A DNA stretch of 64,000 bases from Chlorokybus atmophyticus (Eukaryota > Plantae > Mesostigma and Chlorokybus algae): the NCBI GenBank assembly GCA_009103225.1, contig RHPI01002438.1, positions 1,122,755 through 1,186,754 of the forward strand, written 5' to 3'. This document shows positions 7,901 through 47,727 of this stretch, piece after piece. Position numbers and translations under genes: made by a program. Under the pieces are notes generated by a model, which did no database searches, was not told the origin of the DNA, and worked only from the letters and a program-made list of their open reading frames with translations. Position 1 is the first letter of the stretch; each line of letters starts with the position of its first letter.

Positions 7901-9628
7901 TCAATCTCCTCGCCATCCATGGCCTGGTTTGCCTGATTCTGTAAATTTTGATACATGGTGGCCTTTTCTAAGCCTGCATTCTTTGCCTGTGGATAGTTGT
8001 CACTCAAGTCAGCCGTCAATACGCACCAAGCGCACATAGCCTTAATACAAACGATACGCAGAATACCAGACCATACACTTGCTAACGGGGATTTAAGACA
8101 AAACAGACATTGTGAACACGACTGACGAAAAGCTTACTTTGTGTGCTTCATCATAGATGATCAGCCCATCAAACGACGAGCCTCCGCACCACTCGATAAG
8201 TTGCTCCTGCACAAGATGTGGTCCGCAGGCTGCCTCAAATGCTACCGGCTTCTCATAGAAGAACACAGGACACATGGACAACATGTAACATACCATGCGA
8301 GTCTGGGAGGCGCTTTTGGCAATCAGCGTGTTGTATGTGGCGAAAATAACTCCGCTGTCCAGCCTGACCAACAGAGTGTGTGAGTGCTGCCACCATCACA
8401 ACGAGCCATTTGTCAGCACTGCCTGCTTATTACAAAGCATGCACAGCATTACAAGAGCCAACAGCAGTACCCTGCCATGCTTGAAAGGTCGCCATAGCCA
8501 TACTGCTTGAGCGCATGTAAGTGAATGTACTTGAGAGCATCCAAATCAGCCAAATCCCGCTTGGCATCCAAATGCAAATCAGCTGACGCCGACAGCCAGA
8601 TGTGCTGCACCAATGTCAACGTCAGGAAGCTGCATCACCCATACTCAGAGTTGAGTAGCGATTGCACGTAAGAACCTATGCACATTGCCGTGCACATGTC
8701 ACATTCTGCGCTGACCCAACCTTCACGCTGCACCAAAGTGCATGCAATGCTGGTCAAATAATGCAGTGCAATGCGTACACTACGTGGCAGCCTAGCACAA
8801 ATCTATAAGCATCACACGGTGCAGAACCAACACCCCCGATGCCAATAAACCTAACATTGTCAACACTCACTTTGGTCCTCCCCCGGAAGACATTTTCCAC
8901 AACAACAGCTGCAATCTGGCGGCCTTTCCCAACCCCGGCGCCTGCAAGAACACAATGCTGTAACTTAACAGGAAAGAGATGCACCGAATAGCCAGGAGCG
9001 TGTGTCAGGCTCTGTACCATCAGCCAAGAAGAACCCTCTGCGAGGCCCATTGTCCGGTAAGAACTTTTCATGCTGGTGGCAAGCAAGCAGCACTGTCTCC
9101 AACTGCAACTGCGACAGGCCTCGTATGGTAGCGGGTGGCAGTGCAATCTGTGCAACGGCGGACAGTTTAGCGCACTTCATGAAGAACCATACCATGCAAC
9201 TGCTTAGAGAGTCTCCAACAACAAGGCAAACTACCTTGTATCGACCTGCCAAGTCTGGTGTCTGCACGGATGACAAGCCGGCAGCCTCAACCACCGGGTC
9301 GGGGTGAGGGTTGCCTATGGTGATGTGCTTCGGGTCATACTCGCAGAACTGTAGTGCAACACACATCGTCACAATGACACAACTTGCGCATGACATTTGA
9401 ACTAGATTCTTGACAAGTACCAGTAAGGACTGCATGTACCGTGACTGAAGCGACTCCCCCGGCCATGTCGTCCTTTGGTTCTGCACCAGCTTGCGGCATG
9501 GCTCCATTGCCAGCAGCAGCAGTGTTGAAGCCAGCTGCATCGAAGGGAGGAGCTGCCGTACCGTCCTCATTGCGCTTGCCAAACAGCTGTTCTGCCAGAA
9601 GCTTGGCAATCTCAGCAAGCTTTTCCAT
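1961..9628 (-). CDS. Strawberry notch-like (SBNO/FGT1 family) SF2-type helicase-like protein, multi-exon, with a long acidic C-terminal extension
   Basis: Spliced exons give hallmark SBNO motifs: [27 protein letters not shown] (9250-9350), GFFLADG|[10 protein letters not shown] (8900-9040), [100 protein letters not shown] (~5810-5880), [25 protein letters not shown] and [16 protein letters not shown]. The start (ATG 9628) and stop (1961) are best guesses. Confidence 0.9.
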
Positions 9629-10884
9629 GTTGCTGGCCTGCAAGGCGGTGAGGTGGTGAGTTTCATGGCTTCATACTTGCGCATGTTGATGGGTGCATGC
9701 GCGTGTGCGGGGTGTGTAGCTGGCTGTTTTAGCAAAAGCGTATCAAGTGACAACTGTACACTCAAGTTTCTATTCCAATAACAATCACATCTCTGTCAAT
9801 ACACACTGTTGCAACTGCATCTGAGTGCTGTTTCGATGCACTTGCAACAGTGAAACACCCCACCCCAATGATAACCACAGTCAACTGCTTCACAACGAAG
9901 GAGCTGAAATTAATGAAGTGGGCACAGGCCGGCTGTGTGACATTCTTGGGAGACGCCAAGAAACAGCAATTGATTGTTGTACACCGAGCTGATTGCCTCG
10001 AGCATGTCGTTACCAAGAGTTGTTGATCTTAACTTCACGTCATCAAACGAGTATGACAGCAGTTCATTCTGCGCTGTATGTAAGCTTTCGCAGCTCCTTG
10101 TGTGCGTCTATACATGTGTGCGTGAATGAAGAAGGAACAGTGCTTCCTCCTCCTATGCAGTGCTTCATGAAGCGCTGGACTACATGCAGCTAACAACTAC
10201 TCCACGCGGCACAACAACTGCAATGGCTGTATGCACACCACCTGTGGTCGAGGGGCCGGCTTAGCCGGCATAGCAGACTGTGCGCTGCTTGCGCACAGCA
10301 CACGACTTGTTTTCACGCAGGCAGCAATAACATTGCCATCATAGCATGCGCTTCTCCAGCTCCAACTTCTCACTCGCAGAAAGCCTTTTGCTTAGCTCCA
10401 GCTTTCACCTCAGCTCACCAAACACTCCCACAGCAGGGGCTAAGCGTGCTGCTGCTGCTGCCTCCTGGAAGCAAGAAGAGACGATGTCTTCCTCCAGCTG
10501 TATCAGCTATACCAGCTGTTCTATTCTTGACAGACAGCAAACACCTCAATAGCTAGCCCTCAACCAGCTCCAAGCCTCCTCCCCACGACAACACCGCCGC
10601 CGCCGCCGCCGCCGCTGTAACAGTAGCAACAAGCTGGCGCTAAAGCAAAGTTTGAAGCAGGCTTCCGCCACATCAAATCAGACCAAAACTTCACGTTGGA
10701 AAAACCAAAATCATTGCAACGTTGACGCCTACGGTAACGTTACTGCCGAACCGTCGGATTGAAGCAGCGATACTTGACGTGAACGGTGTCGATAAAGGCG
10801 GCGGCGGCGGTGGCGACTGGGTTGGGCTTGTTGCCGTTAAGGTGGTTGCTGTTGACGACTTGGGAGGTGGCGTAGGAGTACTGG

Positions 10885-12754
10885 ATGGTGAAGACGTGCG
10901 AGCTGTGCTTCGAGCGGCGGGCGGCGCTGCGGAGGCCCAAAACGCACCAGCAGGTGGTTGCCAAAGAGATGAACACACAGCTCTGCTTGGGGCTGCATGT
11001 GGTTGCCAAAGACACGAACTATGTCAATGAATACAAGTGGCATGCATGTGTTGTGTGCACGTTGTAAATGCCGACGAAGTAATCTGAATGTAAGCAAAAA
11101 AGGAAAACAGCACAAGTTGAAGCTGCGTCACAAGTGTGGTTGCAGTCGCTTGTTGCTGTCAACGTTGCTCACAGCTGCTGCGGCAACGTGGCACTCGTTG
11201 ACTCAAGATGCTGCACAGGTCAAGCATTTTAGTGACATGTATTGTGTGTTTAGTGTGATGGATCATGGATCTCCTTCTCAGCTTGCATGCATGAATCAGT
11301 GCTTGCTGCAAGTTAGTTGGCCATGACTGAAAGCAGCTACCCAAAGGTTGATATTGCTTTCGCACAACCCTCCACTCTTGCTTGTTTATTGTTACGGTAC
11401 TAGCGTGCTTGGTTTTGTGTTGATTCAACTGTACTGAGATTTGTTCTTGTCGGCATGTGAAGCTGTGGTGTGCTTAGCTTTGGACGGGCTTTGCAGGTTT
11501 GCCGCGAGTGCTTTTACGAGGCTTTTGAGGCTGAGATTCACAAGACAATTGTGGACAACAGGTTGTTTGTGCGAGGGGAGCGCGTTGCAATAGGCGCCTC
11601 AGGCGGCAAAGGCAAGAACTCAACTGAGAAGTGGTGTTGCCAGTTGCTTGCGACTTGCCCATCTGCAATCACTTGAAGTAACTTGTGGGTCTGCAGACTC
11701 AACGGTGCTTGCGCATGTGTTGACGCTACTTAACTCACGACACAGTTATGGTCTTGACCTGTTCTTGCTGTCCATCGATGAGGGCATCACGGGGTACCGA
11801 GACGACTCGCTGGAGACGGTCAAGCGCAATGAAAAGCAGTATGGCATCCCTTTGAAGGCAAGTTGCGCCTTGTACGTGTGCTTGTGTTGCTTGTTGGGAT
11901 GTGGGCTGCTGTGGATTGATTCGCGACCAATCAAATCTTGTCACACAAGTTAGTCCAGTGTTCATACTTGTACCTGAAGTTTGTGCAACAGATCCTGTCA
12001 TATAAGGAACTCTATGGCTGGTCCATGGACGAGATTGTGAAAGAGATCGGAAGAAAGAACAACTGTACATTCTGCGGTGTTTTCAGGCGACAAGCTCTGG
12101 ACAGAGGTAACATTCAACCTGCATGTTGTGTGCCAAATGCAGCAGTCGCCTTCTCAGTGTCCGCGTGTGCTTGCGCATGCATGTATCACAGTGTAACCTC
12201 TCACTGCAGGTGCTGCAATGATGGGAGCAACCAAGATGGCCACGGGGCACAACGCGGATGACATTGCAGAGACAGTGCTGTTGAACATCCTACGTGGGGA
12301 TGTTCCCCGCCTCAGCCGGTGCACGTCCGTTATCACGGGCGAGAACAGCGTCCTGCCGCGCTGCAAACCCTTCAAGTACACATACGAAAAGGAGATTGTC
12401 ATGTACGCATACTTCAAGCAGCTGGACTACTTCTCCACCGAGTGCGTGTACTCACCATTCGCATACCGAGGCTTTGCGCGGGAGTTCATCAAGGACTTGG
12501 AAGCCATTCGTCCAGCTGCCATCATCGATATCATCAGGTCGGGAGAGGAGTTTTGCTTTGATGTCTCCTTCAAGATGCCAGAGCAAAGACGCTGCGAACG
12601 CTGCAACTATATATCAAGTCAGAAGCTTTGCAAAGCCTGCGTGTTGCTGGAGGGCCTTAACCGAGGGCTGCCAAGTCTTGGCATAAGCCGAACACGCAGA
12701 TCGGGGTCTGTTAAGTTGAGACCATCTGGCGGCCTGCCAGTTGCTGTAACATAG
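10885..12754 (+). CDS. CTU1: Cytoplasmic tRNA 2-thiolation protein 1 (CTU1/NCS6/ROL5)
   Basis: Five exons: 10885-10953, 11497-11611, 11697-11857, 11992-12106, 12210-12754. N-terminal CxxC..RPKT..CxxC zinc site, PP-loop [66 protein letters not shown], and C-terminal CxxC..CKAC. Confidence 0.97.
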
Positions 12755-13442
12755 TGTCAAGCCCTGCTTGTGTTGCTGATTCTCAGGGCATCCGCACCAG
12801 GCTAGGTCTGTTTGTATAGTTGCTCGAGTCCTGTCTGCAGGCAAAGACATTGTGTGGCAGCAGGCTGGCATGTCATGGTCTCAATCTCTGCAAGAGCGCT
12901 CCATCTGTGCTTTTTGTAATTGTACGTGTACGTGCTGTAAGCACTTGCTCAAGTACTAAAGGTTGGGGGAAAATTGGCAAGCATCCAGAATAGTTGACAT
13001 CAATAGTATGAAATTGTAATATAGCTGTAACAAGCAAGTCTTAAAGTCATATGATCTACAATGGTATGTACAAGCCATCATCTCACCCATAGTTGTGCGG
13101 TGATGTCTCGCAACAGCATGACTAGTACGATATTGTGATACAAGATGTCTGACATGTACTTTTACGCGGTTTCGTGTATAAGCCTGAAATTTGCAATTAT
13201 CAATGCGTAATCGGCATGTAGACATGCACACGTACCATGGTTTACAAATGCATGTGATCATATGCTTTGAAGGCCATGTATTCTTGCGTATGTAATGTAC
13301 AACATGTTGGCTCACATAAGCCAACATGTTCATATGTACGCCGCCTTGCTCCTCTGTGCTTCTTATTTTGAACGTGGTAATGTCTTGGTCAACATGCAAA
13401 ACAATCATGTCATAACTCAGGACAGTGTCGTGTAACACCCTA

Positions 13443-13963
13443 TCAGAATAAGCTTCGTATCTCATGAAGCATCGGCTTGTTTAAGTAAAAAGCATCTGTC
13501 GTGTGTAGACACAACACACAAGAAATGCAATGCTGCAGTTGCAACCATTGACGCGACATTCATACTGTAAGCTTGTGTGGGTGTGGCTTGGTGTGGCACT
13601 GTAGCTATCTTCAAGTTCAAGTCTACCAGATTGAATTGCAATGTCCTGTCCTAGCCCTGGTACGTAGCTGAATGGAAAGCGTTTGCAGGGACACTTCCCG
13701 TTTCCCAAACTTCCACGGGGTAGCAGCCTTCTGCTAGCCGTACACGTACGACACCCCGCACGTACAGCTGGGTCTCGACCAGCAATCACGGAAGCGCCTT
13801 TGTGGCTCGCAAACACCGTGGCAGCCCCAGCCCTAACGTACACAAACTATGCTTTGCTAACGTAGGCGGTGCTCGTTGGCAATGCCTCAAAGCTACGCTA
13901 ACGTTGCTGTCGGTAGTACGTTCGGCGCACCCTTGCCACTCTGGTGGGTGTAGCTGTCGACAT
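13443..13963 (-). CDS. Candidate 50-aa three-exon small protein, divergent from PGRL1
   Basis: GT-AG-bounded exons 13963-13931, 13730-13664 and 13495-13443 join in frame to MSTATPTRVARKAATPWKFGKREVSLQTLSIQLHAFYLNKPMLHEIRSLF*. The ATG is in a gccATG context behind a (GCC)n leader like the one before rbcS. No homology recognised. Confidence 0.3.
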
Positions 13964-14194
13964 GGCAGCGTAGCAGCCTACGCAAGCTTGGCAGAGTGTC
14001 ACAGGTGCTGGCGGCAGCAGCGGCGGCGGCGGCGGCGGAGGAGACGGTGGCGGTGGCGGTGGCGGAGAAAGTGGGAGTTGCCGAGGAGTCCTTTGGAGCC
14101 AGATTGGGAGTTGGCAAGCTCGCGTGAGTGTGGATAGTGTCTAAGTGGCAGGGGGAAAGGGCAGAAAGGGCAGAAAGGGCGGGTGATCGGCGCC

Positions 14195-16274
14195 ATGGCG
14201 ACTGTCAGCACAGCGTCGTCGTCGTCGTCCGCTGTGGTTTCGATGCTGGCGGGGCGTGGCTCGTCCTGCGGCTGTCGGTCGCTGCGCCCCCAGATGCCGG
14301 GCGCAAAGCAACTGCAGGCTGCCGCCTCCAGAGTACGCAGCTCCCGCACACAGACGCCCACATGGCGTCGCTCCATTCGCATGGAAGCAGCCAAGCAAGG
14401 TGGGTAGCGTGCTCCTCTTGCCTGGTTTGGCACAATGCATCCTGCGCTTGCCTTAGGTGAAGGCCTTTACCTGCTAACAGCTGTTCAGCTTGTTTCACTA
14501 ACAACAATATACATGCTGTCAGTCACCCCATGCGCAGTGCTTGAAGCATTGGAGACATTACACTTACAGCATTGCACGCGTTACCGCAGCTGCTGTCAAA
14601 CCAACAGCGAACGATGAGGTGGATGCTCACATTCAGCCATATTGCGACATCAAGCAAAAGAAGAAGACGCTGGGAGAGATGGAGAATGAGTTTCTCCAAG
14701 CCTTGCAGGTGTGTATGTGGTGGTGTCATTGCCACCTGCGAGTCATATGCGGTTCAATGTTTAACTTTTATGATATGCACTCAACATTTTATGTTTTCGT
14801 TGTTTGCCAGTCCTTCTACTATGACAAGAAGCCCATGATGTCTAATGAAGAGTTCGACAACCTTAAGGATGAGCTGATGTGGGAAGGGAGCTCTGTGGTG
14901 GTGCTGAGTAAGTCTATAACATTGCATATGCAAATCGCTGTTGGGGTGGGTAACGGCGCAGAATTGTATATAAACTAAACGAGCATGGGTTTAATGCTGG
15001 CTGTGCATGGCAGGTACTCTGGAGCAGAAGTTCCTGGAGGCTTCCATGTCATACCAAGCCGGCAAGCCTATTGTCTCAGATGAAGAATTTGATGTGATGA
15101 AGCAAGAGCTGCAGGTGCTGATGCTTGTTTGATAAGTTGAGATACCTGTGCAATGCCTTGTAGTTACATGGTTGGATGGCACGGAAGTTGATCCTTGCTG
15201 TCGTGCTTGTAGAAAAAGGGCAGCCCCATTGCCGTGCAAGGTCCGCGTTGCAGCCTGCGAAGCAAAAAGGTACAAGGCATCAGACATAAAAACCAGCCAG
15301 CAGTTGCTCATGCAGTCACAGACACAAAGCTAACTGCAGTGATCATGTGGCAGGTGTACTCTGATGCGCGAGTAGATTACCTGCGCATGCTCGCGTTGAA
15401 TGTCCCTGCAGCTCTGGCAGCGTTGGCGCTGTGAGTGGCTGTTGCTGGACTGCCGTGCATCCCGTTGCAGTGGTAACACTTAGAACCAGCTGAATACTAA
15501 CTCATCGCACACTCTTTTCCACAGACTCTTCGTGATAGATGATGCCAGTGGTTTCCGGGTTACGCAGCTGGTTGAGGTGAGTATGCAGGGGGCTCTGTGT
15601 TTGTCAGAACATTCCCTAGCATCGCCCTGAGTTGGTCTAATGTGGGTGCCTGTGTGCATGCAGCTACCGGAGCCCTACGGCATTTTCATTGTTTGGTTGC
15701 TGGTGTTGCCAGCTGTGTACTATACATCGCAAGCGCTGATCAAGCTGGTCTTGACGGACCCCCTCGTCTTGCAGGTATTAGTCCTGTCTAACTGAGCGTG
15801 TGAGTGTGCTGCAGGCGTGTATACCTGTGCGTTGATACTGCTGAATTGGCTGCATTCCCATTTTGTGCAACTTTGACAATGTGTTCTCGTAGGGCCCCTG
15901 TCCCAACTGTGGACATGTAAACAACTCTTTTTTCGGGGCCATCTTTGGTATCAGCAGTGGCGAGTCGGTCAACACGCTCAGTTGTGAAAGGTGGGCATGC
16001 CCCAAGCCAACTGTTGTTACGCAGTTTTGCCATGATAGGTTGTCCGCTGTTAACACTCATCTTGCACTCGCAGCTGCAAGGCGACGCTGACATACAACAG
16101 GAAGAACCGGCGAATAACTCTGGAGTCGCTAAAGCCACCCGGCAAGTCTGAAGGGGTAAGCTTGGTGCAGGCATCACTGTCTGTCGCCCACAGTTATGCA
16201 GCACATGTTGCGTACAACATGCACCGCCTCACACAGCATGAGACGTAACTCATACCACACTGCAGCCGCAATAG
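14195..16274 (+). CDS. PGRL1: PGR5-like protein 1 (thylakoid cyclic electron flow regulator), multi-exon
   Basis: Ser/Arg-rich transit peptide, then QPYCDIK..KKTLGEMENEFLQALQ, SFYYDKKPMMSNEEFDNLKDELMWEGSSVVVL, EQKFLEASMSYQAGKPIVSDEEFD, GPRCSLRSKKVYSD, NVPAA, GPCPNCG and SCESC (all six conserved Cys). The final micro-exon (stop at 16274) is tentative. Confidence 0.95.
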
Positions 16275-17149
16275 ATTGAGGAACAATCAATTGAGCAATT
16301 AGTCACGCGGTTTGCTTCCACAACAGGAGGGAAAGTCCAAGCCGGCGCCAAAGAAGGTGCCCGCCAAGGCTCCCGCAAAGGTGGCCTAAAGGTTGTTGGT
16401 AGTCTTACTTTCCAATATATGCGATATAACCATAGCTGCGGATGGGTGGGGTGGGGTGGAGTTCCATAGCAAGTGCAGGATGCAGGCGGAGGGTGATGTG
16501 TTGGTACAGTCTTGTGCTGTGTTGGTTGACAGACAAACGCAATGAACATGTAATTGTAATCTCCTACGCAGTGTTTTCCGCAAGAACCACCAGAACTCGC
16601 TTTGTCATGTTGGTTGCTTTGCTTGTGCAGCCTTATCTGCTGCTCATGCACAAATCCAAACGCCATGCAGGTATCGGATCACAAACTATGCCAGTCGCGA
16701 GGAAGTGAGCTGCTGACGACATCAACCATCACTAAACAAGCGTGCAATCTTGGTTCTCAGAACAGAACATGCAGTATGTACATGGTCTTGAGGTGCTGCA
16801 ATGACATGCAATCACGAATGATTGGTGCACTCCGCAAATCAGTGATGCAGTTGATCATTCAATATCCAATACATCCACAAGTCAGCTATGCAGTTCAAGA
16901 ACACAAAGTATCAAATGACAAATCACATCACAACATGCCACCTTTTGCACTGACCTGCGTGTTACATGTGGCACCATGTAACAAATGGGTGTCTGTTTCC
17001 ACCACAATGCAAAGAATTGCGCATGTGCACAACCACTGCTTGTCAAAAATGTATCCCTGGTTCCTGGCCCACCGCGTCTGCCTGCAACACCTGGCCTTGC
17101 CTCCAACCTCCAACTCCAACCAACAGCCTGCAACACCTCATCGCTGCAG

Positions 17150-40488: not shown

Positions 40489-42653
40489 CCGCAACTTGCA
40501 CCACAGGAACACACAGCACCACGCACGCCGTGCACCAGCCACTAGTGTGGCAGCGATTTTGTTTTATGACATGTAGTAATTGCCATTGCAGTCTTAAGTG
40601 CTGCAAAGGTACGGAAACAATGAGTTTGTGCTGACGCATAGCGGAGTTGATCAAGCACATTCAAGAACTTTGAGATGTACTTGGTGCGGCTGGATATGCG
40701 CGCTAAGTGCAAAGTACATCTCTTGGTACAAACTTCAGGTTGAGCAGATAGACTAGAGCCATCCTTGATGGGCTTAGAATTTGCCAGGCACCTTCGCCTT
40801 GGTTGTACCTGAAACCTGTGCATTCAGTCGTTGCAATGAACGCGCAGGTACATAGGCTTTTCAGCAGTGAGAGCACAAGGTCCACAGGCACATTGCCGTT
40901 TCGCATTGTATGTACACACAAGCATAGCAGCACTCCAGCCCAAGCAGAACTGTTATGACAAGCGCACGGGAATGCACTGTGTACTGTCTAAGTGCTTGAG
41001 TTGGTACATCTGCCTGCATTGCTGTTACTATGAGTGCGTGCACTTGCAATTATCAATGGACAATAACATGTTCATCCGCATTTAATGTACACCCATTGCA
41101 ATGAGTAAAGTTGGCTGTTGTGCGGTGGTTACTCTGACGTGAAGGTATTACAACTTCGTGCAGCAATGCCTGCGACGTAGTGTCCGCACATACAAGTGTT
41201 CTGCAGGGAAATGCTGACACTGACTATATTACCTATATGCATGCTGCTGGATTAGAATGCTTGTCTTGGTTAGTGAGTGTACAGGATATGTCCGAGGCAG
41301 TTGTAAACATGCATGTTCACACCATGCATCACATGCTGCACGCATCTTCATGCTGTATGCACGACCCCCGGGCTGTGTGTGCGTGCTGCGCATACTTGCA
41401 ACCATGGAATATCTGTGTAGTGGTAGAAGTAGTGGGGCAGTTGACTGGATTGATCCGGTTGTCTACAATATGCTTTGCTATTATTGGAGGTTGCTGTGGT
41501 ATGTGGAGTATCAACCATGCATGTGCATTGGACGTTGTGGAGTTATATGCTCAATGTACAAAAGGGGTGTGCTACTATGCCGGCATGCATCGTGTACCGA
41601 GACATGCAAGCGACATGCATCACACTACATGGGTAAACACATTCTATTCACCACCGGGCTAGTATTTCTATGCTATGCCAACTTTAGCCTGCCCCGTTAG
41701 CCATGCAGTCAGCATGCAGAATTGTATTCACCTTTGCAGCGGTGGTAGTTTGCGTCATGTGTAGTCCTCGTAGTTGACACGGGCAGACTTCACTGCTCCC
41801 CATGTAATTGCACGTATGGATTCGCCTAGCGTCGTGTGGTCTTCGCTGTCTGTCATCTTCAGCACTGCCCTGCAAGACCCGACAGGGCGGGATCTAACCA
41901 TTAACTGTGCTGCCTACGCATGCAAGGTGCTTCCGGTGAAGCGCCCCTACCACTATGACAGTCACACACTCCCAGACCAACCACTGATTCCCATTCACCA
42001 CACAACATGCACCCCTCTGCAAAGTGATAGAGGGTAGCAAGGAAGCATTGTTTGTACATGTGTATTGAAAATGTACAAACAATGCTCTGTTATTGTTGGA
42101 GGTTGCTGTGGTACGTGGAGTATCAACCGTGCATGTGCATTGGATGTTGAGTTACAAGCTCAATGTGTATTGAACATGTATAAACAATGCGGAGATAAGC
42201 CTGTGCAATTAACGACTTGCTGGAGGGTGAGATTTGATTCAGACTAGACCGTGTATCTAGTATAACGGCGGTTACTTGTTGGGTTATGCATGGGCCAGAA
42301 GAGCTAGCTTACTAACCACTTATTGACCACACACACACACAGCGGTGGACAGATCTGTGCTTGTTGCTTACTACATGCATGTATGTAACGGTACATACAG
42401 CAAAGTTGTTCGTACCGAACGCCATTACCACAGCATGTACACGAGGGTGAAATCCAACGCAGTGCAAAGACACAAGGCAATTGCAACTGCCAGGGAAAGT
42501 GTAGTCAGCGTATAGAGAGAAGTCACATGGGCAGGAAACAATTGTACATTGTATAACATTAGGGTTCGCCTATGGTTGACATAGCTGGACACTATGTAAT
42601 ATTCCACTGCAAGCAGTTGCTATGCAAGGAGTCTACTACCTAAGTGTTTGCGT

Positions 42654-43428
42654 TCAGTAGCGGGAGCCGCCATAGCTTGAGCTCTGCTGCTGGCCATAGC
42701 CGCCGCCGCCACCGCCGCCGCCACCACCACCGCCAGTGCCGAAGCCCTGCTGGCCTGGGCGCTGGACAATGAAGCCGGCGCACTGGACCTGGCGCTGGGC
42801 GTCGAAGCCAATGACGCGGATGTAGGCGTTGGGGTAGGAGCGCTTGGCCTCAGAGATCTCCTGCAGAACCTGCTGGGAGTTGTTGCAGCCGAAGAGGGGC
42901 AGCTTCCACATGGTCCAGTAGCGGCCGTCATAGTATCCGGGGCCGGAGTTGTACTCGCGGGAGACGAAGCCGTTGTGGTCGAACTCAATGCAGGGGATCC
43001 AGCCCTGGGCAAGCAGGTAGTCAATCTGCCTGGCAATGCCGTCCGCGCTGAGGGGGGGCAGGTAGGACATGGTCTCGAATTTCTTGTTGTTGGTCGGGGG
43101 CCACACCTGTTCGGCAAGGGACCATAGGCAGTCAGCAGCCGCTTAGCAACCCACACAGTGCTTGGCTGACGACAGGAAAACAGAGCAAACAACAACAGTA
43201 CAAGCAGTCAACAGCAGCCTAGCATCCCACACGTGCATTTGGCACAAAGCAACACACCTGCATCATGGAGACGGTGGCGCCATTGCTGACGGTCTTCTGG
43301 GAGAAAGAGGCGGAGGCCTTGCCGAAGGCAACATTCTTCCTGAGGCCGCTGAAGGCGGCGACGGGCTTGACCGAGGCCGAGGCGGCGACGGTGGGGATGA
43401 CCGCCGCGGCGGAGCTGATGGCAGCCAT
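42654..43428 (-). CDS. rbcS: Rubisco small subunit precursor with an unusual 33-aa Gly/Tyr/Gln/Ser C-terminal extension
   Basis: Exon 1 (43428-43258) encodes the transit peptide plus MMQ; exon 2 is 43106-42654. The intron lies at the conserved MQ|VWP position. Core [49 protein letters not shown], then GQQGFGT(G)12[14 protein letters not shown]. Confidence 0.98.

Positions 43429-44544: not shown

Positions 44545-47727
<3,183 letters not shown>

Follow-up and report, generated by a model that had tools for sequence, protein, structure and literature searches.

A nuclear rbcS gene of Chlorokybus with a glycine- and tyrosine-rich C-terminal tail, and its candidate role in Rubisco clustering

Condensation of Rubisco into pyrenoids is understood in few algae, where it depends mostly on separate linker proteins, and we know of no Rubisco linker in streptophyte algae or prasinophytes. 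In the Rubisco-binding motifs of two such linkers, the key residues are W and R/K (EPYC1) and Y and K/R (SUPA1). An RbcS with a disordered extension in Ulva was judged unlikely to drive condensation, which is achieved there by the separate linker SUPA1. A linker built into the small subunit has been described in the hornwort Anthoceros agrestis: the C-terminal extension of RbcS-STAR alone is reported to condense Rubisco, both in the hornwort and in Arabidopsis (Robison et al. 2026, Science 391:1070, as reviewed in PMC13655443).

The locus described here lies in a 64-kb window of Chlorokybus DNA (the window being the whole stretch that was analysed) and encodes an RbcS that likewise continues past its fold. 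An earlier note, made from the sequence, had proposed that the continuation is a prion-like tail that condenses Rubisco and had named a C-terminally extended hornwort RbcS as a precedent. That precedent is real, being RbcS-STAR, and its coiled coil makes it mechanistically different.

Gene model, protein core and surroundings

The flagged stretch (42654-42755, minus strand) comprises the last 33 codons and the TGA stop of an rbcS exon, as given by the open reading frame list and its translation. Translation and splice reconstruction yielded a nuclear two-exon rbcS, encoding a 207-aa precursor once spliced. The features of the gene are summarized in Table 1.

Table 1 Features of the tailed rbcS gene, with the evidence for each.
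Feature	Position	Strand	Content and evidence
rbcS exon 1	43258..43428	-	Start codon 43428-43426, transit peptide and first mature residues, ending ..VSMMQ; translation
Intron, 151 nt	43107..43257	-	GT..AG (GTGTGT..GAACAG ends); splice reconstruction and RNA-like contigs
rbcS exon 2	42654..43106	-	Mature RbcS core, C-terminal tail and TGA stop (42654-42656); open reading frame list, translation
RuBisCO_small fold (PF00101)	42756..43079	-	Residues 10-117 of the exon-2 product; Pfam, PDB, AlphaFold2
Low-complexity C-terminal tail, 33 aa	42657..42755	-	Precursor residues 175-207; translation, codons, pLDDT
Gly12 spacer, interrupted GGC/GGT run	42699..42734	-	Codon list
3'UTR, ~190 nt, GC 0.435	42463..42653	-	RNA-like contigs

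The exon-2 product matched the Pfam RuBisCO_small profile over its whole length (positions 1-97 of 97, E=5.5e-38). Plant and algal RbcS chains in the PDB were matched with a best E of 1e-55, with the alignment confined to residues 1-118 of the exon-2 product; because solved structures align only through residue 118, about 30 residues lie past the canonical RbcS C-terminus. The AlphaFold2 model of the core, based on a 30-sequence alignment, showed the expected helices and strands with a pLDDT of 85-95 over most of its length and ~62-73 at residues 41-70.

The leader encoded by exon 1 is 55 aa long, Ala/Ser-rich and ends in ..SMMQ directly before VW, which agrees with the M(Q/K)VW pattern of mature starts. 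This putative plastid transit peptide aligned with Chlorokybus and Klebsormidium RbcS leaders, and was closely similar to the leader of P0002, an RbcS of Chlorokybus Chlat1 (JGI). P0002 was also the closest protein overall, with 90% identity by BLAST and 92% over 117 core columns, in line with the earlier assignment to a streptophyte alga, and the protein is a genuine RbcS. No second rbcS copy was found in the window by tblastn.

Several repeats surround the gene. About 1.1 kb upstream of the rbcS ATG begins a nearly perfect (TG)n microsatellite of 3.2 kb (44545-47727), with 1591 copies and 99% matches, which accounts for the extreme GC and AT skew at 44-48 kb; it stops at a single N (47728), possibly an assembly join. 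Just downstream of the rbcS 3'UTR, two 68-nt direct repeats (41470-41537 and 42082-42149) are 91% identical and 612 nt apart, and are probably part of a dispersed repeat. A scaffold gap of 782 N occupies positions 85-866.

Transcript evidence and reading frame of the tail

Three sequencing runs (X1-X3), which represent one organism and two independent studies, were compared with the gene; labelling them as RNA is a guess, backed by the empty intron and flanks. Depth was zero across the intron (43107-43257) in all three runs. A contig joint in run X3 skips the 151 nt, and a loose end at 43253 in run X1 carries exon-2 sequence. Exon 1 was matched exactly by RNA-like contigs at 43266-43417. At the other end of the gene, contigs of X1, X2 and X3 match from 42463/42488/42493 to 42689 with zero differences, an interval that includes the 3'UTR, the TGA stop and the final 11 tail codons, and none of the runs had depth below 42441. 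Further contigs begin at 42747 and enter the core; several contigs are longer than their placed part and so reach into the Gly run. Positions 42690-42746 were masked as a repeat in the read comparison, so that the exact RNA match covers both sides of the Gly run and not the number of its glycines. The transcripts bear out the splicing, the tail end (42657-42689) and the 3'UTR.

In X1 and X2, contigs at the stop codon and along the 3'UTR account for a considerable minor share of the depth summed over rbcS, and in X3 for a tiny one; contig depth is a rough measure that cannot rank expression. The tailed rbcS is clearly expressed, and the gene is a genuine expressed nuclear rbcS paralog of Chlorokybus. 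In X1, depth at 42582-42675 was ~8,800-16,700 compared with ~4,100 on the distal 3'UTR contig; this excess by the stop codon may reflect alternative polyadenylation, or k-mers common to a paralog.

After ..FIVQRP the frame runs on as GQQGFGT-G12[14 protein letters not shown] and ends in frame with ..SSSYGGSRY, confirming by translation the 33-aa tail that had been reported. The Gly run consists of one GGC, three GGT, three GGC, one GGT and four GGC codons (8 GGC, 4 GGT). The tail has a GC3 of 0.76, compared with 0.90 for the remaining CDS, and an overall GC content of 0.74 vs 0.435 in the 3'UTR, and it shares the CAG and GGC preferences of the core, in agreement with the mixed codons and GC3-rich style noted earlier. 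An open frame of 33 codons is expected by chance at UTR composition with P ~0.12, so that the open frame alone is unremarkable. By composition, the tail is 55% Gly, 82% G/S/Q/N/P and 15% Q/N, with four aromatics (F, Y, Y, Y), a single Arg and zero acidic residues. It contains two [G/S]Y[G/S] motifs (GYG and SYG), in addition to GFG and an RY at its very end. In the AlphaFold2 model, residues 123-149 of the exon-2 product had a pLDDT <50 and no secondary structure; the tail is thus predicted to be disordered.

The tail end ..SSSYGGSRY resembles ..SSSFGGRYKY of the Klebsormidium-like protein P0278. This likeness pins down the frame before and after the Gly run, since a hidden frameshift would break it. 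The two alternative frames of the tail give Ala/Val-rich or Arg/Trp-rich products without relatives. These observations bear on the reading of the tail as an assembly or annotation artefact, in which the Gly run would hide a frameshift or the stop would be misassigned, and the real protein would end near ..QRPGQ. Such an error would draw on the masking of the Gly run in the reads and on the absence of the exact tailed protein from the protein collections searched; exact look-ups in a contig index with P0002, a 34-aa tail fragment and the exon-2 product likewise gave zero matches. We regard it as extremely improbable, as the post-Gly sequence is in frame and like its relatives, RNA contigs are exact on both flanks and extend into the masked stretch, and the independently annotated paralog P0002 is also tailed. 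The codon style, the exact RNA contigs at the tail end and 3'UTR, the P0278-like end and the ~30 residues past solved RbcS structures all argue that the tail is real.

Tails on the RbcS of other algae

We took as tail everything past the conserved ..F[IL]VxxP fold end in the proteins returned by the searches (Table 2). P0278 and P0004 derive from the same JGI sample, where they lie on mRNA-sized, intron-less contigs.

Table 2 C-terminal ends of RbcS proteins from other algae and from the Chlorokybus paralog.
RbcS	C-terminal end
Chlorokybus paralog P0002	18-aa tail, Q/N-rich, ends ..GRNYY
Klebsormidium-like RbcS (core 80% identical to K. nitens), short forms	5 aa, GQAQF and similar
P0278, Klebsormidium-like	16 aa, start GQQQFGS, end RYKY
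P0005, Klebsormidium-like	61 aa, QGYG units
P0004, Klebsormidium-like	79 aa, GYG/SYG units and RGRGRDRD patch
P0030 (core clusters with type B, the second RbcS type of K. nitens)	87 aa, Ser-rich, three SW[DE] motifs, two of them then PSFFG
Micromonas commoda XP_002501187 (P0297) and marine relatives	Gly run (G9-G11), Pro run, conserved QQNYSW end
P0122, P0228 (unplaced)	YSW end
Ostreococcus lucimarinus P0373	Plain 15-aa end; neither Gly run nor Pro run nor QQNYSW
Amorphochlora amoebiformis P0273 (chlorarachniophyte)	56-aa tail, three SSSFG units

The tail had been put forward as a possibly unique solution, and this did not hold: related tails are widespread on the RbcS of several early-branching green lineages. 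The survey of paralogs and relatives gave tails on P0002 and on Klebsormidium-like, Micromonas and Amorphochlora RbcS, and none on the annotated RbcS of K. nitens (P0010, P0016), Spirogloea, Mesotaenium or land plants. Like the Chlorokybus tail, those of P0278, P0004, P0005, Micromonas P0297 and Amorphochlora P0273 combine G/S/Q/P spacers with Y/F/W residues as putative stickers and an aromatic end. An aromatic residue stands at or beside the C-terminal end in nearly all tails, and some ends are conserved across differing cores, namely QQNYSW, AGYSW and PSYSW in one set and R(x)Y in streptophyte algae. Individual features also recur, with runs of G9-G11 in Micromonas-like tails and a GQxxFG start and RY end in Klebsormidium-like ones. 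Chlorokybus and Klebsormidium type-A RbcS share the common frame QRP-GQxxFG[ST]..[YF]GG..R(x)Y; outside these two groups the sequences cannot be aligned, and the lengths of the other algal tails compared range from 16 to 87 aa.

The tree of cores alone placed the window RbcS with P0002 at 100/99, followed by the Klebsormidium type-A clade with modest support (86/77). Tailed and tail-less forms, with tails of 5, 16, 61 and 79 aa, are interleaved within the type-A clade, and tails have therefore often been gained, lengthened and lost.

Other searches added little. A metagenome scan with the exon-2 product found 58 RbcS loci with zero close relatives of Chlorokybus, the sole tail among them being of the P0004 type. 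A search scored on residues 96-150 for similar C-termini retained P0002 alone among four candidates. When P0004 was the query, the sole additions were RbcS of the polyprotein type (P0305, P0306) and one duplicate from a faulty assembly (P0304), with no named tailed species. Long "tails" of the land-plant proteins P0001, P0006, P0093, P0133 and P0154 resembled duplicated exons, read-through or mis-annotation and were not counted. Gly/Tyr or related tails on algal RbcS were undescribed in the literature searched, which misses most subscription journals and is thus weak evidence of novelty.

The SW[DE]/PSFFG tail of P0030 is shared by P0275 and P0277 (JGI and Logan contigs for the three); its sequence has the look of a genuine sticker motif in repeated form and not of mere low complexity. 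Micromonas commoda (tailed) and Ostreococcus lucimarinus (plain end) would offer a natural contrast if Ostreococcus is without a pyrenoid, and we know of none in that genus. A Rubisco matrix is present in Micromonas (PMC10473226).

Selection was assessed on a related tail and not on the Chlorokybus gene, using the orthologous 79-aa tails of the Klebsormidium-like relatives P0004 (L002) and P0289 (L008). The two tails differ by eight synonymous and five non-synonymous changes, corresponding to a dN/dS of 0.15; five or fewer non-synonymous changes out of 13 would be expected under neutrality with a binomial P=0.0019. Ten of the 11 aromatic positions are identical and the remaining one is changed from Y to F, while the remaining substitutions and both indels all fall on G/S spacer residues. 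On these counts, purifying selection acts on the 79-aa tail of the Klebsormidium-like proteins, and the pattern fits constrained stickers on looser spacers.

A tail of this kind could also be a tolerated, near-neutral extension with no specific function: in GC-rich genes, slippage of trinucleotides and drift of the stop codon would make the solvent-exposed RbcS C-terminus longer or shorter. The Gly12 encoded by a GGC/GGT run is what slippage could leave, close relatives and paralogs differ widely in tail length and sequence (the four type-A lengths and the differing Chlorokybus tails), pyrenoid-bearing K. nitens has tail-less annotated RbcS, and a chance open frame of this length is not rare. 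By contrast, the GGT interruptions indicate that the Gly run is no fresh slippage product, the end motifs are kept across different cores, similar architectures occur in four lineages, and the related long tail combines a low dN/dS with kept aromatic positions. We judge a near-neutral origin of the Chlorokybus tail somewhat unlikely.

A possible sticker role and its relation to known systems

The Chlorokybus tail may be viewed as a GQQGFG stub, a flexible spacer of 12 Gly and an end piece with three Tyr and one Arg ([14 protein letters not shown]). As Rubisco is an L8S8 complex, each holoenzyme would display eight such tails, at a C-terminus of RbcS that tolerates extensions and tags. The aromatic/Arg end could make weak contacts with other tails, with a neighbouring Rubisco surface or with another pyrenoid protein, and such contacts could help Rubisco to stay in the pyrenoid matrix. 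We tentatively favour this possibility, in which the tail would be a tethered sticker aiding Rubisco clustering in the pyrenoid, with somewhat less than even confidence. The role is physically reasonable because the STAR extension condenses Rubisco and because, in Amorphochlora, an RbcS-GFP fusion assembles and reaches the pyrenoid.

Favouring the sticker role are the recurrence of tails in pyrenoid-bearing green lineages, the conserved aromatic ends, the dN/dS of 0.15 in a relative, and the RbcS of Ostreococcus lucimarinus, which is without a low-complexity tail. On the other side, the tail is short, has four aromatics and is more than half glycine, and a poly-Gly run in a GC-rich gene can come from slippage. 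The tails of the Chlorokybus paralogs are strongly divergent, so that selection, if any, would act on composition and the end motif and not on the sequence. Pyrenoids are present in K. nitens and many zygnematophytes, and the tail-less RbcS annotated in K. nitens and found in the zygnematophytes Spirogloea and Mesotaenium implies that a tail is not required for a streptophyte pyrenoid. The extended RbcS of Ulva, judged not to be the condensing factor there, also counts against the role. Similar RbcS tails in further early-branching green algae point to a contribution of the tail to Rubisco clustering in the pyrenoid without proving it.

The same data could be explained by a function other than gluing Rubisco to Rubisco. 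The tail might serve for docking or regulation through another factor, for example activase, a chaperone of assembly, a tether to the starch sheath or to a membrane, or an enzyme that modifies Arg or Tyr. It might instead be a tag sorting isoforms between two pyrenoid types, or a solubilising entropic bristle. Short linear binding motifs typically have this form, with conserved terminal residues carried by a flexible spacer, Chlorokybus has at least two differently tailed rbcS paralogs alongside its two kinds of pyrenoid, and Chlamydomonas, Chlorella and Ulva condense Rubisco by separate linker proteins. However, no candidate partner emerged, and homotypic sticking fits the same data equally well; we consider such a function unlikely.

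A broader version of the tethered-sticker reading seems improbable. Under it, aromatic-tipped disordered RbcS tails would be an old and widespread means of linker-free or linker-assisting Rubisco clustering in Chlorokybus, Klebsormidiophyceae, Mamiellophyceae and the chlorarachniophyte plastid, gained, lengthened or lost with pyrenoids, and the Chlorokybus paralogs would sort Rubisco between starch-sheathed and naked pyrenoids. The Chlorokybus cell has one pyrenoid of each kind (PMC8611356). For Amorphochlora, the accessible part of the pyrenoid proteomics study proposes a separate linker, PPAP28, and does not mention a C-terminal extension of RbcS (PMC10927497).

The 2026 work on RbcS-STAR showed that the small subunit can itself carry the glue, a one-gene route that is attractive to crop engineers. 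If it is true that short Gly/Tyr tails condense Rubisco, they would constitute an even smaller, sequence-tolerant module, and would give a pointer to pyrenoid formation in streptophyte algae and prasinophytes. The comparative pattern provides concrete test proteins, including paralogs with and without a tail that occur together. Should the tails be inert, they would be a useful warning against assigning function to low-complexity ends.

With regard to the EPYC1 site, the contact positions D23, E24, M87, L90, R91 and V94, taken with the Chlamydomonas construct sequences from the He et al. 2020 preprint, correspond to A, D, Q, L, Q and S in the Chlorokybus tailed RbcS when aligned by eye. Four of the six contacts are thus changed (D23A, M87Q, R91Q, V94S), E24 is replaced by D and L90 is kept, which bears out the earlier remark that several EPYC1-binding residues are missing. 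The difference says little, because EPYC1 and its RbcS site are conserved in Volvocales only (He et al. 2020 preprint).

The description of the tail as prion-like or FUS-type was overstated. What it shares with FUS-type domains and plant glycine-rich proteins is a Gly/Ser/Gln-rich composition, tyrosines in GYG and SYG and predicted disorder. The FUS low-complexity domain has ~214 aa and ~27 Tyr, and the default core length of PLAAC is 60 residues. Unlike FUS, the Chlorokybus tail is about six times shorter, is dominated by the homopolymeric Gly12, has a low share of Q/N and falls short of the 60 residues; octameric display would be needed for useful valency.

With EPYC1 of Chlamydomonas, CsLinker of Chlorella, SUPA1 of Ulva and PYCO1 of a diatom, the tail would share the logic of stickers on flexible spacers, with multivalency as the driver. 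In these linkers, helical motifs are repeated 5-6 times or more on a protein of their own, whereas the putative Chlorokybus sticker is part of Rubisco itself, with a single copy on each small subunit. RbcS-STAR is closer in layout: it too is a specialised RbcS isoform expressed beside other rbcS genes, with an extra C-terminal region, in a streptophyte with pyrenoids. The coiled coils of STAR are formed by two regions predicted to be alpha-helical, whereas the Chlorokybus tail is a mostly Gly stretch of 33 aa with no predicted helix. The product of this gene is, as a protein, a normal RbcS whose end is out of the ordinary. The candidate mechanism would carry the idea of a built-in linker, established by RbcS-STAR, over to a disordered tail.
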